In this document: piece by piece, positions 12,153-55,200 of the stretch
Layout of the letters: each line of letters opens with the position of its first letter
How positions within the stretch are numbered: position 1 is the first letter of the stretch
NCBI GenBank assembly: GCA_000708835.1
Contig: DF237123.1
Location: 97,444 to 161,443 of the forward strand
Direction: 5' to 3'
Source of the DNA: Klebsormidium nitens
Lineage: Eukaryota > Plantae > Klebsormidiophyceae
Length of the DNA stretch: 64,000 nt
Made by a program: the position numbers and the translations under genes
The notes under the pieces: generated by a model
Databases searched by the model: none
Seen by the model: only the letters and a program-made list of their open reading frames with translations
What the model was told of the DNA's origin: nothing

Positions 12153-14742
12153 TCACCACTTCTTGCCCCACTTCTTGTGCTTGCCCCACTTCTTGCCGCC
12201 AAACTTGAACATATACGCCTTCTTGCTCTTGTGCTTCTTGTGCTTCCCGTACTTCCCATGGCCGCCATAGCCGCCGTGCTTGCCGTGCTTCACAGTCTGG
12301 TAGCCGGGCACTGCGTAAGGCATCGGGTAGCCCCCAGCTGTAGATAACAACAGTTCTGTCAGAAACGTTCACTCTGGAACGGATTACGGTAGTTCTGGAT
12401 AGGTTGGAAGCGGGAGCCGTGCTTGCTGTACTTCGCCTGTTTTGATGAAAGCGGAAAACCGAATTGCGAGCAATCGGTGCCAACCTTCCCTGCTTTATGA
12501 TTTGGCCGGCCAGCGTAAGGCATCAGGCAGCCCCCAGCTGTAGAGCAAACAACAACAGACAATCAGAACAGTCCAATCCAGATCTAATTACGTGACCCTG
12601 GATAGACTGGACTTTGGTGCCATGCTTCCGTGCTCTAGGCATTGGGCATCGCCAAGCCCCCATTGGCAGCCAGCGCATCAATGTTCTGCGTTTACTGGAC
12701 GTCAGCTTTTATGACATCTGTAACAAATTGGGACGATATGATTGAAGTGTGTTCGTAGTCGGATTTCGATGCAATAGTAGACACTCTTCTTTTGCAGACA
12801 CACCAGCCCTTTCAATCAGCTCACAAACATCATAAGAACCAATCCAATCAGGGTATTTTGGTAGTTGAGCAGTAGGACAGAGCTCGTCCTCGAAGATGGT
12901 TAGGTTGCATCCGCAATGATCGCAAAAGCATAACAAGTCTGCAATTGCAAAGTTAGATGCGTAGTTGCAAGCACCATCCAGCTCTGCAAAAAGCCGTCAG
13001 CTTCTGAGGTCAGAAGAGCTCAGAATGGTCAAGGTCAGCAAAGTCCAAGGCAAAAGGAGCAGTAAAGCAGAACGGGAAGAGTCTTGGGACGAGGAAGGAT
13101 CGCGTCAGCTCAAACTCAGGAAAGCAGATTCATCAATAGCATTTCGTTTTAGTAGGCTTGGAGCACTATGGACGTGCGGCTTTCCTAATCTCCGTTAGCT
13201 TGCTCGGATTGCCCTGGAAGTAGCCTGACTCGCAATTCCAGACAAGGAGGAGGGCTCTAAGCAACCAATGCACTATCTGATGCTTTAAGGGACGCGCAGG
13301 AGTCTGCCCTGTTAAACTGGAAAGGGAATCAAAACACATACTAACTGAGCGAAAACAAGTAGGAGGGGCAGGTGGCAACAGGACGGAAATGTCAGCAAGG
13401 CCAAGGGGAATAGATTTCGGGAGTTGGCAACAACTCACGTGCCGGGGCTGGGTAGCCGGATGGTGGATACGCTCCGCCCTGCGGGGGGTATGCCTGAGGG
13501 GGATATCCGCCAGTGGGGGGATAACCAGGGGCTCCATAACCGGGGGCGCCATACCCAGGCTGAGGATACCCCCCAGGAGCAGGGTATCCCCCAGGAGCGG
13601 GATAACCGCCAGGGGCCGGGTATGCTGGGGCGCCGTAACCCTGAGGAGGTGGGTACGGATAGGCCTGAGGAGGGTAGCCGTACCCACCCCCATGACCCCT
13701 CTCTTCGATGCCCCCCCTCGACTCAATGCCTCCTTTGTCTTGAGTGCCTCCTTCCTCTCCTGTTGGGGGAGGTTGATCGGGGTACCCCGCCGGTGGCCCC
13801 TGGGGGGGGACTTGAGGAGGGTATCCTTCAGGGTACCCTTCTGGAGGACCACCCGGGTTACCCCCTACAAGATTGTGAAGAAAAACTAGGGTTGAGAAAC
13901 AAGTTGCCATTCTGTTGCTCTCATTCAAGAGAAATGAAACGAGTGAAAAGCTTTTCACTTGTGAAAGAGTGCAAGTCTTAAGAGTCCTGATCAGAGATAC
14001 CTGCATTGATCTGACATTAAAAGATGCTGTCCAGTACTGAGCTGGAAGACAGAATAAGTGGAACCTTTAGGTAGAAGTTGGCTTTCTCAGATGTTGGTTG
14101 ATATTGGAGCAATACGGCACCACTTGACTTGCCTGTGCTGAGTAGGAACATCTAACTGGAGGAATGTATGTTTTTTGGAACTTGTTTCATTCTGCACCTC
14201 CAAACCAAGAACAAAACATGAAGGACCATGAAGTCAGTTGAGCCCCCTGCTTTCCCCGCAGCTCCAAAAAACTACTCCTGCTGCATATTGCAGCTCCCCC
14301 AGTGCAGTGTAAGAAGGAGACACACCAGACAGCATGAAGGGAGTGCTCATTGATGCTGACATGTAAGAAGCTCTGCACTGCCAACATGTCCACATACATG
14401 CAGGGCAAAGTTCTCTGCTTATGTGAGTAGCAAGGAGGTCTGCAATTTTCAGATAGGACTATGAAGCAAGCAATGGAGACAGGATCAATTGCAAAAAACT
14501 GGCCATGAAAAGCTTGTCTTAACAATGAGGACGCAATTTGCAAACTACGACTTCTCTAAAGCCAATTGATTTCATGATCAACATAGAGGTGAAACGTGTA
14601 CAGCAAAATGAATCTGACAAAAACCGGACTGCTGGCAGGCAGACAGACTGCCAACAGGCAGACACGACAAATCAATGTGAATTGCCTCAAAACTCTGAGC
14701 ATCAGCAGCTTAGACCTCACCTGGAGGTGGATTACCCGCCAT
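12153..14742 (-). CDS. Glycine/proline-rich protein with GYPP repeats and a His/Lys-rich tail (glycine-rich protein A3-like). Exons 14742-14721, 13864-13439, 12337-12153
   Basis: MAGNPPP|GGNPGGPPEGYPEGYPPQ...YPAPGGYPAPGG...GYPAPA|PGGYPMPY...KHGKHGGYGGHGKYGKHKKH...KKWGKHKKWGKKW*. All junctions are GT/AG in phase 1. The GYPP plus KHGK...KKW architecture is typical of this plant family. Confidence 0.85.
12505..12550 (-). repeat. Intronic degenerate copy of the acceptor and start of the last exon of the Gly/Pro-rich gene
   Basis: ctctacag-ctgggggctgcctgatgccttacgc versus the real atctacag-ctgggggctacccgatgccttacgc. Confidence 0.8.
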
Positions 14743-15476: not shown

Positions 15477-18400
15477 ATGCCTCCACCTTCTGGAAGCAGT
15501 ATACCGTCAGTAGCAATGAATGCTGACGCAGGCGGTTCAGTGGGGCACAACGCTCAGGCGCCAGAGGAAGCGCAGCGACCTCTGGACTTCGAGCGTTGGT
15601 CTCTTGATAGCGAAACAGCACAGTTTGAGGGAGGTAGCAAACACGACGGCAATTCCTGTAGGAGCAGCTTAGATATTGATGGGGTGGCAGTGGAGTCAGA
15701 GCGTCAAGGAAAAAGCCAAACAAAGCGTCCGTCTCAAAGCAGAAAGGAACAACAGCATCAAAAAGCGGTCCAGAAGAAGTACGGGCCGGTGGGATCATTG
15801 AGCAAGATCAAGCGTTTGCTGTCGTCCAGTGGGGGAGACTTTTCAGACGAAGAGGAACAACTAGGTGGGGAGAGAGATACGCTGCTTGCGCCGGCCCCAT
15901 CATCGTGTTATGTGGACGCTGACGATCAGAGTGAGGGGAAGGAGTCCGAGTACTGGAAGGAGGCCAAGCGACTATGGAACCTCGCCGTGCCCATCGCATT
16001 TATGCAGGTAAAATCGTTTTGCTTTTGCAGCTTCATGTTGTGCGAAAGCGCTCTCAGTTTCGTCAATAGAACATTTGCGCTTCTTGTTGGGATCTTCAAG
16101 TTCCACAAACTGCGTGCTGATTACGGTGGGGCTTTATATCGGGTGCAGCAGATGTAGTTGCTCCACCAGGCTTGTGTCCTTCAAAGATGAGTTGGCAGGT
16201 TCAAAGACATCCAAAAGGGTCTGCATGCACACTTAGTGGAGCCTCGAAATGGGGATGCTACTACGCAGCCTCTGATCTCCAGCCAACCCGCCAGGTTCTG
16301 CTTTCTCTGCGCACCTTTTATAAGTGTCCCGGGTAGTGGTTCAAACTCCTACACAGCTGATAATCCTATACTGACTTCTGGACTCAGTGGGGCACTCCTG
16401 AGACTTTGCAAATTGCAGAAGTAGCCCTTTGCCAGTGCAGAATACTGGCATAAAGCTTAAGGCGCCGCTTGCCTCCCTGTAGGTTCTCTGGTACGCGCGC
16501 ACGGTCGCCAGCCTCATCTTCGTAGGCCACCTCGGGGGGGTGCAGCTCGCTGGCATCGCGTTGGCCAGTACTTTTGCGAGCGTGTCCGGGTAAGCTTTTA
16601 TTTTAGTCATCAACATGTGCCCTCTCATGCGTTGCTTCCAGTATGTCCGTTGGCTCTTCGTAGAGCCTCAGCCCATACTGCTTTCCATATCCGCAGTTAA
16701 GGTTTGAACGGATTCTCTGCTCCAAATATCCAGACGGTGAAAAGCAGCGCCAATTCTTAGACGAAAGCTTGGCGGTGACCCCCTAAGAATCAGACACAAC
16801 GACGTCTTAGAGAGGAAACGATTGAATCACTCAGCACTTGTGGATTTTTTGGAACCTTCAATGTGAGGATCTGATTCTTCTGCTGAAGTACGTATATGAT
16901 CGGCCTCTTGAGCAGGGATGAAGTTCTGGGTTGTTACCTCGCTGATGGATCACTTTGACAACTTTTTGAACGGCGCCGTTCATATCCTTTTTAACCGGTT
17001 CTTTTCATTGTTTCTTATGTGCCATTCATTCGGATCTGGTCCTATTCATACTGTCCTTACTTGTTGTTTACGTTGCTTCTACCTTCTCAGGTATGCTATC
17101 ATGTTCGGCCTGGCTAGCGGAATGGACCCCCTCTGCTCCCAAGCGGTCGGCGCCAAAGAGTACGCCGCAGTTGGGTTGACGCTGCAACGAGGGTGGGCCG
17201 TTTTACTGTGCGTGTGCGTCCCGACGTTTGCCACGTGGTGGAACGTGGAGCCCTTCTTTCGGTTTGCCAGGCAGGACCCGGTTCTGACGGGGTTTGCCAG
17301 CGAGTACTTGAGAATCCTGACCCTGGACCTGCTGTTCATGGGACTGGCGCAGCCGCTGCGGGTGTTTTTGCGGTCACAGGTGCGTTCTCCGCCCACCGTT
17401 TCGAAAGTTCACCTTTGAACTGTTGGTGTCTCTGTGTTGCAAAATGGCCCCCCCTCGCCCAAGGGCTTGTAGGTGCGTTTTCGCTGTCGTGGTACGATTC
17501 TGATCATGTCTTGGATGCTTCTGTCGCTGAAGTTCTGCTCAATTGGCGCCTAGAAATAGCCTTGGGGAACGTTAGCAAAGAACGGTCCGGTCGCTGGTCC
17601 AGGGATTTGCGTGGATCAACTTAGATTTAAATCCGGTTTGTTGTTGCCACTATTGATGTTCTGCATCAATCTGTTCAGAGTTCCGGTCAGGAGTGAACTA
17701 ACCGCTCAACCTACAGCATGAATGTAAACTCCTGAACAAGGGTGCCATAACAACCAAGTAGCGCAACCTTTTACAATGCTCAAACTCCTCACTTCCGAGT
17801 CAGCGTATCTCCGAATCTGCAGGGAATCGCCAAGCCCATGGCCTGCTTCGTTGGGATCGCCTTCGCTGGCGAACGTCTTCTTGCTCCAAGTGTTCAGAAA
17901 CTGCTGAACCTCGACAGACCTCATCCAAAGCTGGGAAAGTCACAAACGTCAAGAAGGTTAAAGTTTCACACACTGCGCAGGGCATTACCAAGCCCATGGC
18001 TTGCTTCGCCGGCATCGCCTTCGCGGGCCACGTCTTCTTCCTCCACGTGTTCATAAACCTGCTGAACCTCGGCGCGCGCGGGGCCGCGATCGCGCAGTGC
18101 TGCACGTCGTTCAACTTCTTCATGATGCTACTGCTCTACGTGCGTTGCTACCCGGGGCCTCACCGCCAGTGCTGGGACGGGCGGTTCGACGCAAAGGCAC
18201 TGAATCCGGCGGGATGGAAGCCGCTTTTGAAGCAGGTAGGGGGCTGGATATTCTTCTTTAACAGGCGCTTAATGTTTTCTTTTGCGGTTATTTTGAAGTT
18301 ATCTAAGTTGGGAGATGCTTGAAAGCGGATTGTATACTGGTGGGGCTTCCTTTACGGATGTTGATTACGCTGCTGCTACCCGAGGCCTCACCGCCAGTGC

Positions 18401-21348
18401 TGGGACGGGCGGTTCGATGCGAAGCCGCTGAATCCGGCGGGATGGAAGCCGCTTCTGAAGCAGCTGAGGAAAAGCGAGCTTTGAAAGAAGCTCCGTGTTG
18501 TGCTTGGATGCTTGAGCTGTTCGGTTGCATCTGGAGTTCGACTGGTCAGGGATCACGTTGCTTGGAAGCCCACGGGCTTTGGGAGGTGCAGATCCTGCGA
18601 AGAGGCAAGAAGCTGCTTTCGCGAGCGAAAGGAGTCGAAGTCGTCGAATTGGACCTTTCGAGCTGTGAGACTGTTTGAAGCATCGACGTTTCTTCTTTGA
18701 AGGGATACCGTCGGAAGCGGCTGAATGTGCTGAAGTCATCTTGCAGCCGTCAGCGATCGTTTATGAGGGCCTGGCGCGAACGGTTGAGCGCACAGTATCG
18801 AATTTTTCCCGGTTCTGACTTTCTCCGGCGACCATGGTGCAGGCCATCCCGTCGCTCGTGTCGCTCTACCTGCAGCGCTGGTCCTACGAGTGCATGGTTT
18901 GCCACCAAGTACACAGGACCGAAATGTCAGCTGCCCGGTTTCGACCATTTCCGGCGACCATTTTGCAGGCTATCCCGTTATTCGTGTCGCTCTACCTGCA
19001 GCGCTGATTCTATGAGGTCAAGGCTTTCGACCAGGCTATACATCGACCCTTTAGCTGCCCGGTTCTGACTATTTTCGGCGACCATTTTGCAGGCCATCCC
19101 GTCGTTCGTGTCGCTCTACCTGCAGCGCTGGTTCTACGAGGGCATGGTCATCATGGCCGGTTGGCTGCCAGACCCGCACGTGCCAGTTGGTGCGATGGCG
19201 GTCGCTATGAACGTGTTTTCACTGGTCACCATGTTACCAATGGCGTTCAACATTGCGGGGGCGACACGTGTGGGGAACGAGCTTGGTGAGGAAATTGTCA
19301 CCAAACCTTAGTGAGTGGTCTTGATTATAGAGAAAGGAATGCTTCTCTCGAGGAAGTGAATTGCGGCTGCCATGAACGTGTTTTTACTGGTCACCATGTT
19401 TCCCATGGCGTTCGACAGCGCGGGGGCGACATGTGTTGGCAACGAGCTAGGTGAGACTAGGTGAGACCAGAGTTTACTATTAACGTTTCGAGTCTTCTGT
19501 TCTTTTTGTTCTTTTGTGAGATAACAACGCGTGTAATATTGGAAGGTCAGACTTGGGATTGGCTCGGCATGTTCATTGGGGCGAGACTGTCCGGCAACGA
19601 AGCTCAGTCAGAAGTGTTTTGGACCTCTCTTCTCCGTTGTTCTTTTCGCCAGGAGGAAGCTTGTGTGACTTCGTTCCTTTTCTTTTGTTCATTTTGGCAA
19701 GGAGGAAGTTTGTATAGCTTCGTTTCCTTCTTTGTTGCTTAAGCTTACCTCATCTTCATGTGTCCACACGCAAACAGGTGGTCAGACCGCTTATTTTACA
19801 AGGGTGCGTCGCCTTTCTCTAAGCCGTCTGCATTGGCATCTTGGCTTCGAAAGTCCCGGTTTCCACTTAGTGCTTCATCACCGTCGCCTCTTCTTTTCCA
19901 AAACCCAAACCCTAAGATCATTCTCCAAAAGGTGTACTGTCAGGCGCGAACGCCGCCCGGGGCTAGCCGCGTAGCATTACTTTACGCTGCCTGCGTTGGC
20001 ATCCTAGGGGTAGAGTAGCAGTCCCCATCTGACTCGATACCCTTTGCGGGCTCAAAATCTTCTCAAGTTGAGCCCGCCTTAACTGGTTCTTATTCTCCTT
20101 TTCCAGGCGCGAACGCTCCTCGGGGCGCACAAGTCGCGAGCCGCGTCGCGTTCCTCTACGCCGTTTGCATCGGCGTCATGTGGTGCGTCATCATCACGTC
20201 ATCCCGTGAGGTCATCCCCCGGGTTTTCACCACTGATGGCGACGTCCGGGCGCTGTGCTCCACGTTGCTGGTCGCCCTCGGCGTCTGCCAGCTGTTCAAC
20301 TGCCCCATGTCGGTGCTCGGGGGACTGCTCCGAGGGGTGGGCAAGCCGTCGACAGTAGTGGTGAGTAGCCGTCTTTGATCTGTACATAAGTCTCGTCTTA
20401 TGTTGACTTAGGTTTATGTTGAGTTAGATCAGTTCCCCGGGCTCAGACATAGTAAAAGTCTAAACCCAAAGTTAACATGCTCCGCACCTGTACCCACCCT
20501 AAACCTCCATACCAGCCCCACCCGTCCCCCAAGCTTGACATAACTCAACGTAGCCGTAAGTCAATATAAGATCGAGACTACTGATCTGTACTTGATCCAT
20601 AACCGAGCAAACATCAGATGATTTGATTGGAATTCACGGCTGCGCTCGAGAGGTTCTCACTGGTTGACAAAAGTCGTGGCAACGCGCAGTTCTTGGTAGG
20701 CTTCGTTTTCCATTTAGACAAAGCCGCGATGCATGTGGAGTTGTGCGGAGAACAGCCTCATGGTCTTACTTTGCCATCAAGGAGCACCTTGCGAAGGAGG
20801 AACGTGTAACCTATCTCCAAGGCCCTTTCGCATGTTGTGTTCGTTAACAGATATATGCAGCCTTCGTTCAAAGATCAGAGTTTGTGGTTAACCTGCCCAC
20901 TAACTCATCCGTTTTTGGCCGCTATACGTCTTTATTTGCGGGAGCTTCTTTATACGTGCAGGAGCTTACTCCCCTTCCTCTTTTCTGCCAGGTACTGAGC
21001 CTTAGTTCCTACTACGTCATCGGGTTGCCCACTTCGGTTACGCTCACCTTCTACAAGGGTTGGGGCGCCCTCGGCCTCTGGTGGGGCCTAACAATCGCTC
21101 AGAGCGTTATGGTAACCCTGATGGTTATCGTCGTAACCCGGTTATCGTGGCAGGAGTTGGCGGATAAAGCGCGGAGCCGGGCGAAAGAGGGGGGCCGGGA
21201 CGCGGAGAAAGTGCCTCGGAAAGGGGGGTGGAAAACTGGAAACGATAAAGCGGGGGCAGAGGTTGAGAAGTTGCTCCGAAACGGGGGGGCAGAGAAAGCT
21301 GATGTTGAGGCGGGGGTGAGTGGGGTCGGAAGCTCGAGGGAAAGATAG
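15477..21348 (+). CDS. MATE/DTX family transporter (copy 1). Exons 15477-16007, 16483-16589, 17091-17379, 17981-18235, 19093-19285, 20107-20360, 20992-21348
   Basis: Hallmark MATE motifs: EAKRLWNLAVPI, FVGHLGGVQLAGIALA, GLASGMDPLCSQAVGAKEY, LRVFLRSQ, QRWFYEGMVIMAGWL, GATRVGNELGAN, LGGLLRGVG, YYVIGLP, GALGLWWGL. All exon lengths are consistent with phase. Confidence 0.93.
17815..20015 (+). repeat. Cluster of intronic partial exon copies in MATE copy 1, at ~17818-17918, ~18365-18475, ~18805-18895, ~18930-19015, ~19362-19456, ~19565-19610 and ~19945-20010
   Basis: Each aligns by eye to the nearest exon edge. For example 'gcaggccatcccgtc..gtgtcgctctacctgcagcgctg' occurs three times at ~125 bp period, and 19362-19456 reproduces the exon end with its GTGAG donor. 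Confidence 0.9.
20386..20581. mobile_element. Non-autonomous MITE-like insertion (~196 bp) with ~45-bp imperfect terminal inverted repeats and a 10-bp target-site duplication (Mutator-like)
   Basis: The left arm agtctcgtcttatgttgacttaggtttatgttgagtta matches the reverse complement of the right arm, agtctcgatcttatattgacttacggctacgttgagtta. TGATCTGTAC flanks both sides (20376-20385 and 20582-20591). Confidence 0.7.
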
Positions 21349-22678: not shown

Positions 22679-25600
22679 TCAGGCCCCGAAAGCGGCACCT
22701 GTTTCAAAGACATTGCAGTTTGAAGACGATGTCAGAAGCAGCTCTGCTTCGCGCCTCACCATTCGCAGCAATGCTTTGCAGTACCAATGAGTGTATTCGG
22801 AACTCTCGCACCGAGGCAGGGGAGCCGTTTAGGTTGCTCCATTTTCTTGACGTTATTGGCAGTCACGACGTGGATGATCCTTATCAGAATGAGTCCAATG
22901 TGAGCTGATGCGTGCGCTTGATTTATGCTGGTGCTTTGTTTGATATTCTTGTGCCCGTTAATGCAGGGAAAGTCCACGAAAGCCGTATCCCCTGGAAAAG
23001 CTGGCTGCAGCACTTATAAAAAGTGTCTTACTCGAGAGGAGTCTGTTCATGAGCGGCTGCACAATATTACCTTGAGAAACAGAAAAAGAAGTAGTATCAT
23101 TTTCCTTCATAGCTACATGAAGAAGAATGCAACTCAGGGGGATTGAAACCCATTTCAGACACAAGGACATGCGTGGAACGGCCGCAAAAGAGGTACAAAA
23201 GAAAACCTGAGCGAGCAGTGAAAGTTGTTTTCGTTCTGGCCTGAAACATCAAACAGGATAACCACTGCGGTCCATGACACGGACTGCAAAATCCATCGCT
23301 TTTGGGGCTTGGTTCCAATCGAAGAAGTTGCTTGTTTTGGATCATGATTGTACAGAAACCGACTCGTAGTAGAACAGTTGAGAATCAGCAAGAGCTCGGA
23401 TCTCCTGTGCGTGTTCGGACACTTACCAGAAGCCGGAGCAGGGGCGGGCGCGGGAGCCTGCAGCAGCCGGCGTCCGTTGGCGCACGGCGTCGAAGCTGGA
23501 AAACACAACCAGACAGATCATGCGAAAGCGCAACTTATCGTAGAATTAGCGAGGCCAGGCGGAAGCGCAAAGATCGTAGACACTAAGGGATCAGGCGAAA
23601 GCGCAGAAGTTGGAGACACTGAGGGATCAGGCGAAAACGCAGAAATTGGAGACACTGAGGGATCAGGCGAAAGCACACAGTTACAAACACTTCGTGAATC
23701 AAGCGTAAGCCTACGGGAAAGCAAGAAATGGCGTGGAGGCCGATGTTTCCAGAACCGTTAAGAGGGTAACCTTCCCCGAGCAACATGAGCTATTTTGCCT
23801 TTGTATCAGATTGTGTCAAAAGAAAAGGAATTTGGTATGGACTACTGACTCGCAGGAACGCAGGCTCCCAGCCTGGCAATGTCCGGGTTCAGCGGAACAG
23901 GGCCTCGCAGCTCGCACACCAGCCCGGGGGGGCAGTCGATGGGGAGAATGCTACCCCCCTGACGGCAGGCTGCGCACTCAACAAGAAGAACTTGTCAGGG
24001 TAAAAACCGCAAGTGGGCAGATCGGTATTTGAGCTCGATTGCAGTATCCCAAAGCGATTGGTGTGAATACAGAAGCTACAGCAGACAGATTAGTCGTTTC
24101 TCGAGGACTGAGGGGATCCCTTCGTGTAAGAATATCCACTCCGAGAGGTTCGCCGCATCTGAGAACCGCATATCAGTTAAGGCAGAGCGTTCAAAATTCT
24201 GCTGCTCACTTGCAGGAACGCAGACTCCCATCCTGACATTAGAAATAAGAAAGTTAGAGCACTCAAATCTAGTCTTAATGACTAAAGGCCGAGGGATCCC
24301 TTAGGGTGACCAAGAGCTTTGCCGCATCCGATAGCGGCGTATCGTTCAAGGCAGAGCGTTCAAATCTTTGCTGCTCACTTGCAGGAACGCAGACTCCCAT
24401 CCTAGCGATGTCGGGGTTCGACGGAACGGGGCCTTCCGGCTCGCAGACGAGGCCTGAGGGGCAGTCGATGGGGGCGATGTTACCCCCCTGACGGCAGACT
24501 GGAGGACGCAGCAGAATAAGAGTGTCAAAAAGGACGGTGGATAGACTTGAGCATGCTAGATACTAGGGATCTGGTGGCCCTTTAACGGTAAGATGAGACA
24601 CTTATGGGTCCGGTCCAAAGAGAAAGGCTAACGGGAATGATGATAAGGAAGCAAGCTAGAATTCCACGGTACATACTAGACTATTGATCGAAAGTGCTTC
24701 TGACCGTTCGTTGGCAGCACAAAGGTGCAGGAAACGAGATGGACTTCGAGGGCATAGGTATTGATAGCTTCTACCGGCGTGCATGAAGACCTGTGGATCT
24801 TTTTACTTCTTTTGAGGCCAACGGATGTTGGCAGAAGATCCCTTGAAGGCAAATTTATAAGATAAGAAAGGAGGACAGGAGAGGAGGGTGTGAAGGAAGT
24901 GGGCGACCCTTACTAGGCTGCGTGACCGTCTTGGTCGCCTCCCCGAGCAGCTTCCGTGCTCCGAGGCCCAAGAGAGAAGCTGCACCAGAGAAAGATGGCG
25001 GCGTCGGCTCACAGGACGACGTCAGCTCGCAGGGCAAAGTTACCAACCCCTTGCAATTCATCCAATGCTAAACTATGTTGGTTCTCTCTCAAACCCAAGA
25101 AAACAAACCTTTTTTTCTTATTGAAAACCCTCATAAAATACTGGAAGAGATCCTGAATACTTCGTGGTAAGAGTGGGAGTGATTCTGCATCTTTCCCGAC
25201 CTTTTTCCCTCAGCTCCGACACCCTCGAAGGCCCCGTCCGAAACTAACTGTTCGTAAGTAAAGCAACACGCTTCATTCGTGTGTCATTCGGGCGCCGGAC
25301 CAGAAGGAGCTCTAAAAACAGAACCGGGGGAGCTTACCGAGCAGTCCCCCCGGCGCGGGCGCGGGCGCGCCCAGAAGCGAGGGGATTGAGGGAAGGGCCT
25401 GGTGCACTTTGCGCGCGCGCGCCTTCGCAGCTGCACTTCCTGTTACAGTGGGTGTGAGATTTCAAAGGGCACTAGTGGCTTCTTAGTTCCGACAGTCATC
25501 GGACAGACTACAATGCACCTTGAATTTCTGCCTCGGCGACCATTTTGCCCATTACTGCGGTAGCTGGTCGCCAAGGCGTTACGGTCACAGGACTCCCTGT

Positions 25601-26660
25601 TCGAAGGAAAGGCAGCATCAGAGAAGAGAAGTTGCAGGAAGAACCTTCTGATGTTTCAACGAGTGAAGGAAAGCAGAAGATGTCGAAGGAAAGGCGAACG
25701 AACATACGAGGTAGATCGAGTTGGTGTTTTTTCGACAGGAATCAAAGATGCAAGACTCAGCACAAACACACCGTTGAGGCGTTTCTCAATCAATAGCTTG
25801 CGTACTGTTCTTCATCGGCCATGTCATACTATGTGTATGAATCCAGAAGTTCTTTGAATATTGAAGCAATATCACGACCGTGTCTCAAGAGGACTTTATC
25901 GAACATGACCTCCTCACAGGGTTAGGACGACCTTGCGATTTCATTGGGCTGTGCCAAATACCAGCGGATTTGAAGGATGAAGATTGATTGGAATCGAAAC
26001 TTACCCAGCAGCGTAACAGGTTCGTTCTCATCTTCCTTCTCAAGGATCCTTCGTCCCCCGGTCAGCGACCCTGAATAAGAACACAGAGGCAGGAAAGCGT
26101 TCAAAACTTGTTGTACCTTGTATGGCACCTAGCAATGGCTCTCGCAAGGAGCGGAACACGAGATTGAGGGCTGTATTCGTCAAACTCATTAGTCCAATCA
26201 CACTTTCTGTAAAGTGGGCTCCTGTTTATGGGGCTGTCTAAGGATTTTCGTGCGTCACGTCCAGGTGATTCAAAGCAACTCCGCTCAAGGATTCATTGGC
26301 TTCACCTGGTTGACTCCAACTCAGAAAGTTGCACTACTCTCGAATGAAAGGATCTAAGGGTTCTCGGCAACGTAGAACAGACAAAGTCCACCTTTCAAGG
26401 ACGTGAACCCGATGCTTTGGAATCTCTTCATACTTCGTCGCAAAAAGTTGCTAAGCCGCTCCAGCCCATCACTGATGGTGATGGCCCTAAACTCTAGATT
26501 TTAAGATTCTTTTCCGAAACCCGTGCAAACAAAGCGCGTGCATTTGCGTGCAGGATGTTGACATTCTCACCGATCATTCCGAGGATTCCGCCCGGCGCGG
26601 GCGCCGGCGCCGGAACGGGGCTGATCTGGTGGAGCTTACGCGCGCCCGGGGAGGCGACTC
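22679..26660 (-). CDS. Modular Ala-Pro-rich (AGP-like) protein, second part or second gene (start not identified). Phase-1 exons 26660-26571, 25596-25519 (uncertain), 25439-25338, 24979-24914, 24498-24379, 23495-23427; possible last exon 22698-22679
   Basis: Each internal exon has AG/GT borders and a length divisible by 3: GVASPGARKLHQISPVPAPAPAPGGILGMI; GSAAAKARARKVHQALPSIPSLLGAPAPAPGGLL; ASLLGLGARKLLGEATKTVTQP; ICRQGGNIAPIDCPSGLVCEPEGPVPSNPDIARMGVCVPA; TSTPCANGRRLLQAPAPAPAPAS. Confidence 0.65.
23580..23678. repeat. 33-bp tandem repeat, ~3 copies
   Basis: gacact(a/g)agggatcaggcgaaa(g/a)cgcagaa(g/a)ttgga repeated three times. Confidence 0.8.
23848..24240 (-). repeat. Degenerate copies of the Cys-rich exon 24498-24379: a frameshifted full copy at ~23850-23975 and a 3'-end-plus-intron copy at ~24110-24240
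   Basis: The copy CRQGGSILPIDCPPG has a 1-nt deletion and a changed donor (gtcagt). The second copy duplicates 'aaggcagagcgttcaaa..tgctgctcacttgcaggaacgcagactcccatcct'. Confidence 0.8.
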
Positions 26661-27300
26661 CTGAGCAACGGAGAAGTTTGAGATAGTCTTTCAGTCCTCT
26701 GTCAGATTGAAGAAGAGCAGAGTTTGTCTGGTTAGAGGTTAGACGTTTTTGGTCAGAGGTTTGAACGTATTCGACGCCAGTACACCCATCCGTAATGGAT
26801 AGGGACCTGCCGGGGGAGGAGAATATGGAAACGGGAATTCGTTTCTCAAGCATTGCTTTCGAGTTAGACAAGGCGCAACGAAGGCTTAGTGAGGGCAGCT
26901 AGTGACGTGGGTACTCGTGAAGCTGACGTGAGCAACCGTGCGGGGCATGAAGTTCCAGTGAACTTATCGTAAGTTTCCGCCGTGAAGACTGCAACCAAGT
27001 CCGGAAAGTCTGAAAGGAAGCCCTAGTCATAGTCACGAGTTTCTGAATTGTGAATGCTGGCGCAGGCGCCCGGGACTTAAGCTCTTGCAATAGCTGTCAG
27101 AACGTTTCTGGTAGAATTCTACGTCCAACATACAAGTGTATATATTCGGTTCGTTGATTTTTGCCCAGTAGTCTGCCTAACGACTTCTTAATGCTCGGGT
27201 ATTATTTATGGTACGTGTACTCGGCAGTAAAGTCGATTAGAAGTCTTGTTAGAGAACCACAAGTGTGCGGCCCATGACAAGAATTATGTCTGCTGTTAGT

Positions 27301-30300
27301 TTATCTTCTCAAGGTCGCCTCTCCCTGTAGTAAGAGGCGCATCCCGCCATTCCCTTTCTCCCGGTGCTTTGCCCCGGTCGCGACAGTGGTGCTCGCGCCT
27401 TGGACGGTGATAGTTGTGCTTGTGCCCGGTAGAAGTGAAACTGTGCCCGGTTGAAGTGAAGTGGCGCCAGTTAAACCGGGGCTGCTGACCAGGCTGGTTT
27501 CGGAGGGGGTTAAGCTAAACGTAGACGCCGTACCCGGTGCCGTAACCACCGGGTTAGAGGGAATGGTTACGCTAGCCGGAGGAACGACCACGACAGGGGC
27601 GGAGGTGGCAATTGACACCGGGGCGGCCGTGCCCAGAGGCTCCAGTGTGAAAGAGCCCGAGATCGCCCCGGTTGTGTCTTGCGTCCCGGTTAATGTCCCG
27701 CTTGGGCTACGAACCCCGTTTTGGGTTACAGGCGACACTCCTACAACGGCCGGGTTAGTGACCCCGGTTATCGAAGAAGCGACAGGTGAAACGGACACGA
27801 CTGTGGAGGGGGAAATGAGTGACGTACCGGCGGCGGTAACTAGGGGCGGGGACAGCGCGCCGAGCGTTTCGGCGGGCGTACCTACGACTGAAACCGTCGG
27901 GGGGGAAGCGGCTGACGTCGTGATGACGGCAGTCGTCGAAGTCCCCGGGGGAGCGCAGTCGATGTTTATGTTGACGACGCCGTTTGGGGTCATCGACTTA
28001 ACCGTTGCGCAGTCTGTGCGGAGCTGCCTCTGGGAGCGTTGGGACTCTTGCGGGAGAACTAGGTTGGGCTCGTCGCGTGTTTGGGGTTTCGTGCGGTGAA
28101 GGGTTGTGGCGGGGCGTGAGAGGGATTCGTCGTGTCCTGCGTGCAGGAATCGAGTCTTGGCTGAACACTCGTGTTAATGACGTGTTGTCTGACGTGTTGT
28201 TTTGCAGGACTTATCATCAGAGTGACGCGTGTTGGAAGTCCGACTGTATGCCCAGGAGCTGATAGTGGGTACTGGGTGATTTTAAAGGGAGCGATAGGGG
28301 CGTTGGGCATATACGATTCGAAGTCGAGTCGGGCGGAACAGGCGTGCACATGTGGGGGCTTAGGCGGACGTGAAGTCATAATCAAGCTTCGTTCGACCCG
28401 TGCATTCTGGCTCAGACAAGGTGAACACCCGAGACAAACACTTTAGAAACGAAAGGATACATGTTTCGGCGAATGAGAAGGCAGAGGGTTTGACTACACT
28501 CTATATTTCTCGGGGAATGCAAGAGGCAATAGCGCCTAAGACCAAGGGGCAATGAGGACATTCTAAGTGAATGGGTCGGATCAAGACGACGATGGTAAGA
28601 AAGGGACGGAACACATACAAGTTACGCGACATACATTCGCGTAAAAGAAAACAGAAAAGTCCTTCAAACCAAAGTTAAGCAGACGCCAGTAGAAAACTAG
28701 GAAAATGTATTGGTAGGAAAGTACGTCTGGCGAAGTGACCCTCTAGATTCAGGTTCCTCTTCGGCGGCTATAAGACTATTCCAACCGCTTACCGTTTTAA
28801 ATCTGCTGTACAAAGACGGAGCACGAGACGAGTCACGGCGACTTCTAAGACGATGGACCGAACAATCAATTTAGCTTCACAATCAATATGGGCTCAGTAA
28901 TTCTTTTCAACCCGTTTACCTGGTGCGGGTGCCGGTGCAGGGCTAGGCGCCTGGTGCAGCCTGCGCGCGNNNNNNNNNNNNNNNNNNNNNNNNNNNNNNN
29001 NNNNNNNNNNNNNNNNNNNNNNNNNNNNNNNNNNNNNNNNNNNNNNNNNNNNNNNNNNNNNNNNNNNNNNNNNNNNNNNNNNNNNNNNNNNNNNNNNNNN
29101 NNNNNNNNNNNNNNNNNNNNNNNNNNNNNNNNNNNNNNNNNNNNNNNNNNNNNNNNNNNNNNNNNNNNNNNNNNNNNNNNNNNNNNNNNNNNNNNNNNNN
29201 NNNNNNNNNNNNNNNNNNNNNNNNNNNNNNNNNNNNNNNNNNNNNNNNNNNNNNNNNNNNNNNNNNNNNNNNNNNNNNNNNNNNNNNNNNNNNNNNNNNN
29301 NNNNNNNNNNNNNNNNNNNNNNNNNNNNNNNNNNNNNNNNNNNNNNNNNNNNNNNNNNNNNNNNNNNNNNNNNNNNNNNNNNNNNNNNNNNNNNNNNNNN
29401 NNNNNNNNNNNNNNNNNNNNNNNNNNNNNNNNNNNNNNNNNNNNNNNNNNNNNNNNNNNNNNNNNNNNNNNNNNNNNNNNNNNNNNNNNNNNNNNNNNNN
29501 NNNNNNNNNNNNNNNNNNNNNNNNNNNNNNNNNNNNNNNNNNNNNNNNNNNNNNNNNNNNNNNNNNNNNNNNNNNNNNNNNNNNNNNNNNNNNNNNNNNN
29601 NNNNNNNNNNNNNNNNNNCGCCGGCACAGGCGCAACGTCTTGCTGGAGGCGACGCGCCCCGCGGGCCGCGGCCGCTAACAGGTCAAAGGGAGGAAGCGAT
29701 TTATAGAGAGAGTGACTGCGGAGACAGCATATCCCGGGACTGGTGTGCTGGAGTGTTTCAACAATTCCTTCTCAAGAAAATTGTCGTTGACAATTTGAAA
29801 GCGAAGGTGCGCTCTTCGAACCAAGTCGAGTTGCTTCACTTACTGGGCGCGGCAAAGGAAAAGAAAGAAGACAAAAATAGAGCGATCTTCTGTTGGATCA
29901 ACTATGACTTCTCGCAAACTCATAGCATCTTACTGTAAAATCAGCTTTCCAACATTTGGCGCGAGACAAATAGACGAAGAAAGAACAAAGGCAGGCGCTG
30001 ATTGTCTTTCAATGACTGGACGTTTGGGAGGTTGAGCGCATCCCTTCGCCGATTCAGACAAAGCTGAACGTCCTCAATCTGACCCTCGTTCTCTCGTAAA
30101 CGTTCTAGAACATGATGGAGAGCTCATGCTATGAACGACAGGTACGAGAACAAGACTGCAAGCTGCTCTGCGGACCATCATCTTCGGCTGTCAAAAATGA
30201 CTGTACACGACACAGATGATTCGTACCCGTGACGGGCGCCGGTGCCGGTGCCGGGACGGGGGCCTGCTGGAGGCGGCGCGCGCCCGCGGCCGCCGATGCG

Positions 30301-32887
30301 CCTGGCGCGGGCGCGGGCGCGGACGCGGGAACTGAGGTGTGCGGAAGAAGCAGTGAGAATGTTTTTAAAAATCATGGATATTAGAGGTCTGAACGGGAAT
30401 GCAAAGGTAAAACTGGCTCGAGACGTCTTAGCTTGTCAGCTCCGTGTGAACCAGGAGCACCATTGAGGCAAGGTAGCAGACGACAAGGTTGGATCTCAAG
30501 AACACGGACTTTGAAAACGTTCATCGAGAAGCAGCACTTGCAGGGAAATAAAGGGAAACTTGCTAGAGCGAGAGCTTCCTGACAACTTGACTGGGATCCA
30601 GTACTTAGTTGATGCCGAAAGCGTGCTCAAGCTGGTTGATTATCGTAAGCATCGTGTAGAAGGGATCTTGTCAGAAAGGTCGAAGATTCTGCAGGAAACG
30701 CCCTTACCTGGCGCTTCGACCTGCAACAGCCTTCGGGCGCTAGGAGCAGTTGCTGTGGCTGCAAAGAAGGAAAATAACGTTCGGACTTTCAATCAGACGA
30801 GAAGCAACGGATCGTCGAAAAGAGGGATTTAGTCGTTTGAATGCTTGCTAAGGAGAGGAGAGGAATCGATACCGCCGAGGACTCGGGGTCCTGTCTTGAC
30901 ACTCGACAACTCGTCCTCGTAAGACACGAGATTTGGCTTTTGGTCATATAGAATAGGTACCCAGAAAATCACGCTCCCTTGACGAAGTTGTTTGTTTGGA
31001 GTGACGATCGACCCCTCCGCTTTTGAACGCGAAGGTCCTCGGGTTGAGGCAAGCGCAGATCGGGACTCATGCAGCTGATTGCTCGAGATTAACAGATGGA
31101 TTTTTGAACCTGAGCTTTTCCTTGACCGTTTTGAAGCACCTTCTGCCTTCCTCTTTCAGAAGGAAGGAAGGATCTCATCTGTCCATTCAAACGCTTTTTC
31201 CTTCCAGATCTGAAGATGCAAAGCATATGCTGGCAGGGTTCAGGTTATGTAGCCTCGAGAGAAGCTTACCAGGCGCTGGTGCCGTCGCGTTAGCGGCTCC
31301 CCCCGCAGCAGCAACTGGGGCAGGCGCCGGAGGCACAGGCACCGGGGCAGGGGCCGGAACCGGAACGGGCGCAGGGGCCGGAACCGGAACGGGCGCCGCG
31401 GCAGCAACCGGAACGGGGGCAGGGGCCGGGGCAGGGATGGCCACTGCCCCGGGCGCCACTGCCGCAGTGACCGGGGCAATGGCGGGCCCGGTCACGTTGT
31501 GAGTGACCGGAATGCCGTGGTCCAGGTCATACGCGACGGCGATCGGGCTGTTGGGGACGAGCACGCCGACACCGGTGGCGTCCACGGCTGGAGAGAGGGG
31601 TTACGGGAGGTTAGGGGATGGTTAGGAAGGTCAGGGGATGGTGAGAAAGGGTCGGGAAGGGAGAGACTGATCAAAGGAACTTCCATGCAAATGTTCTTGC
31701 CGTGTCTGGAACTAGAGGTTTTACTGAGCATCTCGACGGGTTTGCTTTCCTGTTGAGAACGTTGAGACATGCTCTAAAGAAAGGAGAGACTAAAGAGCAG
31801 CGCGGATCTGCGGGAAGAAGAGAAACCGAAGACAGCATATCACGTGTTCGTGTATTGACTCACTATCTGAAGTAGCGAGAAGGTGGGCAATGCACCAGCT
31901 AGCCATCCACCCACCCTCAAAGTCACAGAAGCCAACTCCTAAAACGAACCAAATTTTGTTCGCGAGTTGACCTTTGTAAGCAAGGACTCAGCCGATATCA
32001 TAGATGGAAAGGTAGGAGGACCATGCTGTCTTGCTTTGGTGGAATCAGCCGACGAGACCAACCGATCTCCCTCAGAGCACTCAATCAAAATCCAATATTT
32101 ATCTGCATCTATTTGCGTGACAAACAGAGTCGTTCCTTATACGCGAAGAGGCCTGACTGTTCTGGGGTGTGCCCCAGAGTCCTCGTTCTTGGTTTACTCT
32201 CTCGCGAAGCATTTTGCGAGTTTTTTTTAGTTCTGTCCGCGAGTGGGAAAGCAAGCAGCCCAAAGACGTCAAGGCCTCTGGTTATCCAAGTCAGTTGGCC
32301 GATAAAAACTACGAAGTTAAAGTACTTTCCGGACAAAGAAGTCTCAAAAGAAAGTTCGCTCGTGGGCACTCACGTTTCAGGCTTCGGCTCCTCACCCTTG
32401 CAAAACCTGCACACACGCTTGCTTGCCTGAGTAGGAAGCATTCTTTAGGATTCCCCTCTCATCCTGTAGACTCAAGATTGTTCTGAAACGGCTCTTTTCA
32501 ACATTAGTCTTTGGACATGTGAAATAAATCCAGCAATGAAGCCTACAATCGGCTATGACATTTGAAATCTTCTCATTCACATGCATGCAAACTCAAGGTC
32601 AGTAACAAAAAGCCAATATTTATGTCAGCCCAACTGTTTTGTAGGGCACATCCGAGACCTATCTCCTGGGTCTGGGCCAATCAGACGACACTCCCGACTC
32701 AGTTGTAGAAGATACTGAGCACTAATTTCATGACAACCAAAGAGGGGCAGCTTCAGAGCTTGATCTGCATCGGAAACTTACCGGCACGCGTCATCTCGCG
32801 CTCGATGCCCTTTGCAGAGCAGCTTCCCAGCGTGCAGAGAAAGAGCACAAGTAACGAGCACCGAAGCCATGCCTTTGTGAAGCCCAT
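27301..32887 (-). CDS. Secreted arabinogalactan/mucin-like protein with signal peptide, AP-repeat modules and a Ser/Thr/Pro/Val-rich terminal exon. Exons 32887-32782, 31587-31270, 30331-30227, 29674-(gap), (gap)-28920, 28136-27301
   Basis: The N-terminus MGFTKAWLRCSLLVLFLCTLGSCSA is a typical signal peptide. Phase-1 exons encode APVPVPAPAP repeats, ARRLQQAPVPAPAPAP, ARRLQQDVAPVPA and ARRLHQAPSPAPAPAP, followed by a 278-codon S/T/P/V-rich exon. The middle is interrupted by the N gap. Confidence 0.75.
28970..29618. other. Assembly gap (649 N)
   Basis: Run of N inside the GC-rich repetitive AP-module gene. Confidence 0.99.
31320..31445 (-). repeat. Coding GC-rich tandem repeat (24-nt unit encoding APVPVPAP)
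   Basis: gcaggggccggaaccggaacgggc units repeated on the + strand. Confidence 0.75.
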
Positions 32888-52268: not shown

Positions 52269-55200
52269 CTAGAGGTCGGCTGTATCAATCTCCGCCTCAT
52301 CTTTCCGCCAAGAGGGCACGTAAGTCCCCGGTTTCGAGCACTCCCCCGACTTTGATAACCCTACGCCCTCCCGCAGAAGCTCCGGCGAAAGCTCAAACTG
52401 CGAAGGCGCGTACACTCTCCTCTGGGCGGCCCCCGGCTTGCCCGGCGGGCCTGCTACCGCTCTCCCGGCAGAGTCCCCGGTAGGCTCCTCCGACTGCATC
52501 GTCGCTCGCACCGACCACTCACTGCTTTTCCCGTTCGTGCAGATAGTTTGAGACTCTCTCGCTCCAAAGAATGAACCGGGACTGGAGAACGGGCGCTCGA
52601 TCTTCGCGCCAGGCTCCTCATTCCGACCCAGGCTCTCCGTCCGGTCTAGCTCCCCCCAACTTCCGCCCGTCCTCACTCCGCCGCGTTCCGTTTCAAACCC
52701 GTCCGGAAGGTCATCAAACGGTTCCATCGAATCAACCACCCATGACGCGCCGGACTCGGTCAGTCCTGCCGCCGAGTCATAAGGGTCTTCGTAATCTACA
52801 CAGCGGCCCCTCTCGTTGAACTCTTCATCTTCCAGATCCAACAGTTTATCGGTCGCTTGCCGCCCGCTTTCGTTTCTGACAGTCACCCCGGTCTCGTTGC
52901 TCGAAGCCGGCCCCCCGACTGCCTTCCGTTCGGCTGTGTCACCCCCTGTCCCCTTCGTGGAAGCTCCCCCAGTCACCTCGTTTCTCCTTTCAGACGTCTC
53001 CCCATTCCGTCCCTCGCTTCGAACTCTTACGGTCGCCTTGCTGATCGAACTGGGTGGCACGATCTCCTCTTCGAAACCCAAAGGCTGCTGCAAATGGTCT
53101 CCCCATTGAGCGGCCGGCCCCTCCCTTTTGTCTCCGACGAGCACCCCCGCTGAGCTGACGTCACTGGCGCTCAAGCTGACGTCAGACCCGCGCCGAGTTC
53201 CGGCCCTGATTCCGTTCCTGAACCCGTTAGCCGGCCTCTCCTGCGTCTCGTTCCGCGCAAGAAGCATTCCTTCCGTTTGTTCCCCACCTTCGCGGCGCTC
53301 GGAAAGTTTCTCCTCTTTCGGAATCGCCCCCTTCCGATCTTCCAATCTCGTCTCTGCGCGGTCGGAAGCGATCGGCGGCCGCGCCCGCTCGGCGGTCTCT
53401 GCCACGTACAGGTCGTAGTTCCAGGCCCCGGCAAGGTCAGGCGCTTCGTACTCTGGGAGGTTGGGGGTTGTGGGCGTCGTCGGCGTTGTTCCCTCACATC
53501 CTGAGAGGTTTGGGGTTTTGGGCGTCGGTGTCTTCGCTTCCGGCCGCGGCGAAACCTGCTGGGGTTTGAGGGTTTGGGACAACAGGGGCCCGAAGTAGAG
53601 GTCCGGCATAGGCAGGTAGTTGCGGTGCCGGCAGATGAACAGCTCGTGGTCCCATTCGGTGTCAAACCGGGTTCGCGGCCGGTCGAAGAACTCGTCGGCT
53701 GCGGCCGCGCTCGGGAAGCGCACGCACGCGTGGCGGCCGACGGCCAAAACCTCGAGCTCCCACGCCGCGCCCGCGTAAGCCCGGACCTTCTCCCGCACGA
53801 GCGAGCACAGATCGCCCTCCGCGCGCAGCGCGCGCGCGTATGCGCAGCGCCGGGGTTCCCACGCCCTTACCGTGTCCTCGAGCGCGCGCACCGCTTCCAT
53901 TTCCGCGCGCGCGGGCGGCGCGGGCGCGCATTTCTGACGGGCCGGGATGCGGATCTTCTGGGGGATCCCCAGATGGTCTCGCAGGGTGCGGACGGACGCG
54001 ACGACGCGCAGCGGCGCGCGCGCACTCGCGTCCATGACGACCTGGGCCGGGAGTAGCGACGTCAGCTCGACGTAGGCGACAGTTTCGCCTGATCGCGCTT
54101 CCACTGAGGAGCGGATTCCTCGGACGTCCAAAACCCCCCGGGGTAAGGCGTCGAAGCCCGCGAAGAAGTCTCGGAATGCGCTCTGGACTCGGCTTTGAAC
54201 GATCTCCGGGGGCAATTGGGGCGGGATCTGAGTGACGAAGATTTCGGGGCCACAGCCGGCGGTTTTCCAGTCCTCTGCTTCGCTGACGACCGAAGCTTCG
54301 TCACTTTCCGGTGTGATTCTGTGGCCTGAGAGTGATTCCTTGCTCTTGAGCTGGGAAGCTGCCGGACGTGCGGAAGAGGGGCGCGATTGGCTCGTCACCC
54401 GAACCATTGAATCGTTTGAGTTTGTTGCGGCTGAGTCTTTGGCAAATCTCGGGAGAGGCTCGCTCTCGAGATGAGGGAATTGCGTCGTCGACAGAGTTGC
54501 CGAATCTTGGAAAGTCGTGGACGCAGATTCCGGCGTGTGCCTGATTGAAGCGGAAGGGCCTCCGCTGGATCGAGAAACCTGCAAAAGATGCAGCGAGGAA
54601 ACGGTTCAGACCCAGAAGATGACCATCTTCACAATGGACAAATGCTCGTTACATGTCTGGTAGATTCTCACAAGATGCTTCGTCAAGCTCAAGCTTAAAA
54701 TGGTCCAAATTGATTATCCATCCTTTACTTCAAGCTTCATGCGATGCAGCGTTTTGAAAAGTTTGTCATAAGCGGAAACCCTGAAATCTGCTCAAGGTTC
54801 AGTACATTGCAGACTTGACACCCGGTTGCACGAGGCAAGCTACCAGTCATGAAGATATACGAACGAGCCTGCACTCACGTGAAGAAAATGCTGAAAGCCC
54901 GTTTGAGATATAGCAAGCCCGTTCGCACAGAGTTTCTAACCGTCTTGTTCATCAGAGTCATACTCCACCAACATCCCTAGAAAGCATCGAGTAGAGTTGA
55001 AGCTCAAGAAGGCTGCGCATCGCAAAGAAACAGCGTACAGGCTTGAATCTGCTCGGAATGTGAGGAGGCCCCCAGGTCCTAAAATTTCAAAGGATCGCTT
55101 TCTTCTAGAAACTCATTGAAAGAATCAGACCCTTCAAGACATTCTTGGGAAGAGAATTAGAGAAGCATGCGACTTGAATTAACAATCTTCCTCTGCAGAG

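Follow-up and report, generated by a model that had tools for sequence, protein, structure and literature searches.

How should a gene be read whose exons repeat a short basic motif, most copies of it followed by Ala-Pro runs: as the source of a secreted precursor that is cut at the motifs into several peptides, or as an uncleaved structural protein of the cell wall? The question is raised by a multi-exon gene of the terrestrial green alga Klebsormidium nitens, located on the minus strand of contig DF237123.1 (assembly GCA_000708835.1). A 64,000-nt stretch of this contig, positions 97,444 to 161,443, was analyzed (the window); it has about 50% GC and spliceosomal introns, and all coordinates below are window positions. 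The gene runs from 32887 to about 22679 and is public as the hypothetical protein GAQ84058.1 / KFL_001740170 of 549 residues, here termed P0001. A first-pass annotation had described a secreted locus of phase-1 exon modules with a repeated basic motif, and this was confirmed with corrections to the exon chain, which contains nine motif exons. The gene is a real, under-annotated, lineage-restricted secreted repeat gene. Judged from the sequence, processing of its product into several peptides by a protease of the site-1 protease (S1P) type is quite possible, if short of probable.

A basic motif recurs in nine phase-1 exons

The motif [AG]-R-[RK]-[LIV]-x-[QEG] is present in nine phase-1 exons, all, like every other part of the gene, on the minus strand. 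It reads ARRLLQ at 30738 in exon E3 (30708-30758), ARRLQQ at 30281 in E4 (30227-30331) and again at 29657 in E5 (29619-29674), ARRLHQ at 28968 in E6 (28920-28969), ARKLHQ at 26643 in E7 (26571-26660), GRRILE at 26055 in E8 (26005-26070), ARKVHQ at 25416 in E10 (25338-25439), ARKLLG at 24959 in E11 (24914-24979) and GRRLLQ at 23475 in E14 (23427-23495). Seven of these sites had already been listed in the first-pass annotation and stand; ARRLLQ and GRRILE had been missed. MRLLLQ (about 27335), also on that list, does not lie in a spliceable exon. It belongs to an open-frame tail (27301-27533) that all models place in an intron. Downstream of it there is no donor in a compatible phase, and the frame closes at a stop codon 7 codons on; hence it was rejected as a module.

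Runs of Ala/Val/Ser-Pro dipeptides, referred to below as AP runs, follow seven of the nine motifs and are lacking after GRRILE and ARKLLG. In E4, E6 and E14 the motif is accompanied by an AP run; in E7 the run is joined by GGILG, and in E10 it begins 12 residues after the motif and is accompanied by GGLL. After GRRILE comes an acidic stretch. Nearly all charged residues of the AP module exons sit in the motif. Numbered as for a protease site, the motif has an invariant Arg at P4, Arg or Lys at P3, Leu, Ile or Val at P2 and a variable residue (Leu, Gln or His) at P1, and the next residue is Gln at seven of the nine sites. Different modules use different synonymous codons for the conserved residues. 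At the DNA level the modules are 62-82% identical, and their introns are not related to each other; aligned as protein, the modules are 44-88% identical. In a shuffle test over 665 exon-encoded residues, [AG]R[RK][LIV] was matched nine times against a mean of 0.12 in shuffled sequence, and 0 of 20000 shuffles reached nine. The modules are paralogous and their matches are not nine independent events, so the conservation pattern is a better argument than the shuffle statistics.

The gene has grown by tandem duplication of phase-1 exons, and the symmetry of the exons is evidence of this growth, not of programmed shuffling. Module shuffling or skipping, which had been suggested for the symmetric exons, is something that the phases permit and no more.

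The motif sites fit the rule for S1P cleavage

The first exon, E1 (32782-32887), starts with the start codon and ends in phase 1. Judged from its residue and Kyte-Doolittle profile, it is predicted to encode a typical signal peptide, in agreement with the earlier annotation: a Lys/Arg n-region precedes a hydrophobic core of 12 residues, where the Kyte-Doolittle mean over 9 residues reaches 3.1, and small residues stand ahead of Lys-Gly. The protein would thus enter the secretory pathway. No later hydrophobic segment was found in the protein, which is predicted to be secreted, largely disordered and rich in Pro, Ala, Ser and Thr. The alternative that the locus holds two tandem precursors was abandoned: a second gene starting after 27300 would need a start of its own, and no ATG with a signal peptide was found upstream of E7.

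All nine sites fit R-X-aliphatic-Z, the rule for S1P (SBT6.1 in plants), and four of them are canonical (RRLL twice, RKLL and RRIL). S1P/SBT6.1 cleaves RxxL/RxLx motifs, with proven cuts (arrows) at INRRIL↓A in RALF23 and AARRLR↓S in GLV1; SBT3.5, a second subtilase with this recognition motif (RxLx/RxxL), cleaves PROSCOOP12 at TGRRLM↓G (PMC13082318). In pectin methylesterase (PME) pro-regions the cleavage motifs are RRLL and RKLL (PMC4008260). The four canonical K. nitens sites are thus identical to proven plant S1P sites, and the conservation pattern of the motif, with P4 and P2 fixed and P1 free, mirrors S1P specificity. A candidate enzyme is listed for K. nitens: GAQ86362.1 appears as Peptidases_S8_SKI-1_like (PMC6713707 Table S3) and is of the S1P type by that listing. 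Subtilases of the S1P type are found across Archaeplastida; SBT1-5 did not arise until the Coleochaetophyceae/Zygnematophyceae (PMC6713707). The fit to the S1P rule put forward in the first-pass annotation is borne out by these comparisons. As in S1P substrates, the motif region is predicted to be flexible; the Atlas model has a predicted local distance difference test score (pLDDT) of 0.39, indicating disorder.

In the mechanism that we propose, the motifs would be recognized by a Golgi protease of the site-1 class and cut after Z. The near-invariant Gln would then come to lie at the new N-terminus, where it could cyclize to pyroglutamate; this may be why the Gln is kept even though S1P has no need of it. 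A polyprotein is defined by several similar units in a single secreted precursor with a protease motif recurring between them, and here five inter-site segments of 24-33 residues are found. They would be released as five short pieces, three of them beginning with the conserved Gln; each of the five contains AP or other X-Pro dipeptides, which might be hydroxylated and O-glycosylated. The larger products would be the rod of (A/V)P repeats from the N-terminus, the mucin-like block and the pair of Cys domains. A wider proposal can be built on this mechanism, namely that a streptophyte alga without SBT1-5 uses an ancient S1P-type protease to release five or more short Pro-rich peptides from a modular precursor, with three of these peptides starting with Gln and potentially carrying pyroglutamate, that this (glyco)peptide route predates land-plant peptide signaling and arabinogalactan (AG) peptides, and that RxL(L)Q serves as a general signal for propeptides across the Klebsormidium secretome. 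We consider it unlikely that this proposal holds.

The exon chain extends the public gene model

P0001 was retrieved with a profile of the repeat modules, and the annotated exon chain of the window translates to it exactly. About 15 exons follow the signal-peptide exon; the candidates all have an AG acceptor and a GT donor, are in phase 1-1 and have lengths divisible by 3. The GC content of exons is 0.56-0.87 versus 0.44-0.49 in introns. The long E6-E7 interval, which holds a large annotated exon, has a GC content of 0.53. P0001 is composed of E1, E2, E3, this large exon of 603 nt (28136-27534), E7, E8, E10, E11 and the Cys exons E12 and E13. At its end the donor of E13 is read through to a stop at 23841. 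E4-E6, which lie next to an assembly gap, E14 and also E9 are absent from the public model; the public form alone still holds five motif sites (E3, E7, E8, E10 and E11).

E2 (31270-31587) encodes the N-terminal region and then a rod of (A/V)P repeats with a 24-nt period. The pyrimidine-rich tract just upstream of its acceptor (31599-31650) is made up of degenerate repeats of 10-11 nt, which read GGTTAGGGGA on the plus strand. The 603-nt exon is in phase 1-1, has a GC content at third codon positions (GC3) of 0.67 and encodes a Ser/Thr/Val/Pro-rich, mucin-like block without detectable relatives. E4 has a GC content of 0.87, AG/GT splice sites and phase 1-1, and E14, with a GC content of 0.77, likewise has strong AG/GT sites in phase 1-1. 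Since their splice sites are intact, their phase is 1-1, their GC content is 0.77-0.87 and the conserved module is present, E4-E6 and E14 were judged to be real exons. The gap together with automatic prediction explains the difference between the public and the fuller model more simply than exon skipping does. E9 (25519-25596) was rejected as coding: its GC3 of 0.46 is intron-like, the intron downstream of it is only 79 nt long, and it looks non-coding. The 3' end of the gene (22679-23070) is uncertain. E15 (23070-23032) and E16 (22698-22679) are guesses, and other endings besides them are possible. Within the E13-E14 intron is a 36-nt tandem repeat (23556-23674; 3.3 copies, 85% matches).

The assembly gap is a run of 649 N at 28970-29618, in which the end of E5, one or more introns and the beginning of E6 are concealed. 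E5, 70% identical to E4 at the DNA level, enters the run without a donor, and E6 leaves it without an acceptor as a fragment that ends in a phase-1 donor. When the flanks are abutted directly, the frame of E5 is out of register and, 8 codons into the right flank, meets a TAG; at the nominal length of 649 nt, the frames of E5 and E6 are one base apart. Consequently, neither continuity nor frame can be established across the gap. The outer splice site of each flank nevertheless fixes that flank in the phase-1 system. A length of 649 nt fits one intron (the others here measure 330-550 nt) plus exon ends, and an intron with exon ends is most likely what is missing, possibly with further modules.

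Paired four-Cys exons

E12 (24379-24498) and E13 (23850-23969) each encode a 39-residue mini-domain with four Cys in the spacing C-x10-C-x5-C-x17-C and a GL-x-C-E core. The two exons are 82% identical as DNA and 79% identical as protein; their codons differ by 9 synonymous and 8 non-synonymous changes, and all four Cys are kept. An AlphaFold model shows a small hairpin domain (pLDDT 74). The best Foldseek match was the IGFBP structure 2dsp_B (E = 7.5, template modeling (TM) score = 0.40), and the Atlas match was ESM-1 (TM 0.45); neither is significant. An IGFBP N-terminal-type domain (PF00219) was not recognized in E12 or E13 by Pfam at E values up to 10, and a sequence search of the PDB was empty. 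IGFBP/ESM-1-type domains are the nearest look-alikes, by resemblance only.

The intron between E12 and E13 contains, at 24141-24234, an 85% identical copy of 24310-24403, that is, of the last 24 nt of E12 and the first ~70 nt of its intron. If spliced, the copy would yield a 23-nt exon and break the frame. It is therefore probably a dead remnant of the tandem duplication behind E12 and E13.

Relatives of the module are very rare

Exons were searched singly, and the only spliced sequence searched was P0001. Pfam gave no match in any exon or in P0001, a word search with the whole of P0001 returned no relatives, and Atlas searches gave no usable feature matches. Literature searches with the gene identifiers and with RRLLQ-type strings found nothing relevant. 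The module profile was then compared with 1.84 billion representative proteins, where the credible matches were P0001 itself and two open reading frames (ORFs) from JGI metagenomes, P0003 and P0004, each with two copies of M-R-[RK]-L-Q-Q-A-x-x-PAPAPGPG. The search for the module elsewhere that the first-pass annotation had proposed thus yielded these two ORFs and no other credible relative. Profile matches to P0002 (a cyanobacterial-type repeat), P0005 (bacterial) and P0006 (crayfish) were dismissed as unrelated look-alikes, and a search seeded with P0003 returned only itself. The RRL-xQ-AP module thus occurs outside KFL_001740170 as well, but it is very rare in current data.

P0003 and P0004 are prokaryote-style gene calls that apparently read through tandem eukaryotic exon-intron units. 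Each unit has the form Y-G-[FY]...Q-M-R-[RK]-L-Q-Q-A-x-x-PAPAPGPG.

Cleaved precursor or structural protein

Several points count against processing at the motifs. Matching a motif does not show cleavage, and repeats conserve motifs for structural reasons too. Five of the nine sites have Gln or His at P1, and no documented plant S1P site with these residues was found in the literature. Known S1P substrates have one or two sites; nine in one substrate is without plant precedent. Three module exons border the assembly gap, and four (E4-E6 and E14) lie outside the public model. Moreover, neither the word search with P0001 nor a search with the large exon (28136-27534) found transcript-derived protein fragments.

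The suggestion that the products would be AGP-like glycopeptides is the weakest part of the interpretation. AP dipeptide runs are AG glycomodules in land plants, and this much of the suggestion stands; the criteria for arabinogalactan proteins (AGPs) are a Pro/Ala/Ser/Thr (PAST) content above about 50% and AP/SP/TP glycomodules no more than 11 residues apart (PMC5266747). P0001 contains 70 glycomodules, and its PAST content is 45.9%. The module exons have a PAST content of 64-74%, a level that E8, E11 and the Cys exons do not reach. A glycosylphosphatidylinositol (GPI) signal was not found: the public C-terminus stops right after the Cys domain, and no alternative terminal exon gives a hydrophobic tail. 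AGP antibodies give no reaction with extracts of Klebsormidium (PMC7612518). It is the missing antibody reactivity, the missing GPI signal and the PAST content of 45.9% that make this part weak.

If the protein is never cut, it would be a structural wall protein, in which the motif serves as a structural element of each repeat, such as a short Ala/Arg/Leu/Gln helix or a basic patch between polyproline-II segments. The motif could then bind acidic wall polymers, or its Gln could cross-link. As in chimeric wall proteins, the rod-like (A/V)P repeats are combined here with Cys domains and a mucin-like block, and basic residues are common in the repeats of hydroxyproline-rich wall proteins. However, the invariant Arg at P4, the aliphatic P2 and the variable P1 match the specificity of a protease better than a charge patch. 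The motif is also kept in E8 and E11, which have lost the AP run, and its RRL/RKL-QQ core is kept in the distant metagenome modules, whose flanks differ. We therefore regard an uncleaved wall protein as possible but rather doubtful. Cleavage could also be the work of a different enzyme, be it a protease specific for dibasic pairs (kexin/furin-like or Kp43-type) or another one with cleavage after RR or RK. The gene would then resemble fungal Kex2-processed repeat proteins; the basic residues might be trimmed and the C-terminus modified at Gly-Arg-Arg sites. A dibasic pair is indeed present at every site, Gly-Arg-Arg occurs at two (E8 and E14), and the Kp43-type subtilase GAQ83163.1, said to be kexin/furin-like in architecture, is listed for K. 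nitens (PMC6713707). A dibasic protease leaves unexplained the invariant aliphatic residue right after the pair and the near-invariant Gln two positions later, whereas the S1P rule explains the aliphatic residue and puts the cut directly before the Gln. Processing of this kind appears very improbable.

The number of modules could itself be overstated. Only the public 549-residue form, or none, might be made, with E4-E6 and E14 as decaying duplicates or rarely used cassette exons, and the polyprotein would then be mostly an artefact of genomic reading. The public model skips these exons, transcript-derived protein fragments were not found in the searches named above, the locus holds dead duplication remnants (24141-24234) and E9 looks non-coding. 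E4-E6 and E14, however, have open frames in addition to the AG/GT sites, phase and conserved motif described above, and their GC content is well above the 0.45-0.48 of the introns; gene predictors routinely drop exons beside N runs, and the end of the public model is a donor read-through. The five motif sites that remain in the public form would be there in any case. On this evidence, unused exons are quite unlikely as an explanation.

If the motifs are cut, the gene would encode the first S1P-type polyprotein in the green lineage and would parallel the RXL-processed wall precursors of diatoms. It would also give concrete access to the question of how molecules of the AG-peptide kind, or secreted peptides, were produced before plant subtilases expanded. 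If they are not cut, it is a lineage-specific wall protein with an incomplete public model, relevant to the mining of charophytes for hydroxyproline-rich glycoprotein (HRGP) and AGP backbones.

Neighboring genes in the window

The gene is flanked by MatE-family transporter genes (Pfam PF01554) at 16918-21348 on the plus strand (E = 1.6e-22) and at 57593-58711 on the minus strand (E = 3.2e-32). An open frame at 13392-14006 on the minus strand encodes a Gly/Tyr/Pro/Gln-rich low-complexity sequence with G-Y-P-x-P-G-type repeats; Pfam gave no match for it, and it probably represents an exon from a different gene. A 771-residue open frame at 52269-54584 on the minus strand, likewise without a Pfam match, is unusually long for such an intron-rich genome.

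Comparison with known systems

In kind, the gene is akin to HRGP-like wall proteins and, if its product is cut, to RXL-type processed precursors. The plant substrates of S1P/SBT6.1, that is, group-2 PME pro-regions, RALF23 and GLV1/CLEL6, are likewise secretory-pathway proteins with R-R/K-L/I-x motifs. RRLL, RKLL and RRIL are present letter for letter in the K. nitens gene, and AARRLR of GLV1 resembles GARRLQ. These substrates differ in having one or two sites between a pro-region and one mature product, as against nine sites in a repeat array, and the K. nitens gene has no sequence homology to PME, RALF or GLV. AGPs and AG peptides of land plants share the signal peptide, and the predicted pieces are similar to AG peptides in size. 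AG peptides, however, are encoded one per gene, and the K. nitens protein lacks a GPI signal, has a PAST content of 45.9% as a whole and comes from a genus without AGP epitopes. In the hydroxyproline-rich systemin (HypSys) system, several hydroxyproline-containing glycopeptides are reportedly derived from one secreted precursor, as is proposed here. HypSys precursors are confined to Solanaceae and Convolvulaceae, show no homology to the K. nitens gene and have no RRL-type sites, and their Pro residues are contiguous and arabinosylated.

The silaffin, silacidin and cingulin precursors of diatoms consist of a signal peptide followed by RRIL/RRNL repeat units that are cut into several wall-associated peptides; in silaffin Sil1p, RRIL/RRNL stands at the end of the repeats and is lost during maturation (PMC4557024). 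Diatoms belong to the unrelated stramenopile lineage, their precursors show no homology to the K. nitens gene, the repeats are Lys/Ser-rich and silica-forming, and the motif lies at the C-terminus of the unit and is removed. In its proposed way of working, the K. nitens precursor would nonetheless resemble the silaffin-type precursors of diatoms more closely than any known plant protein.

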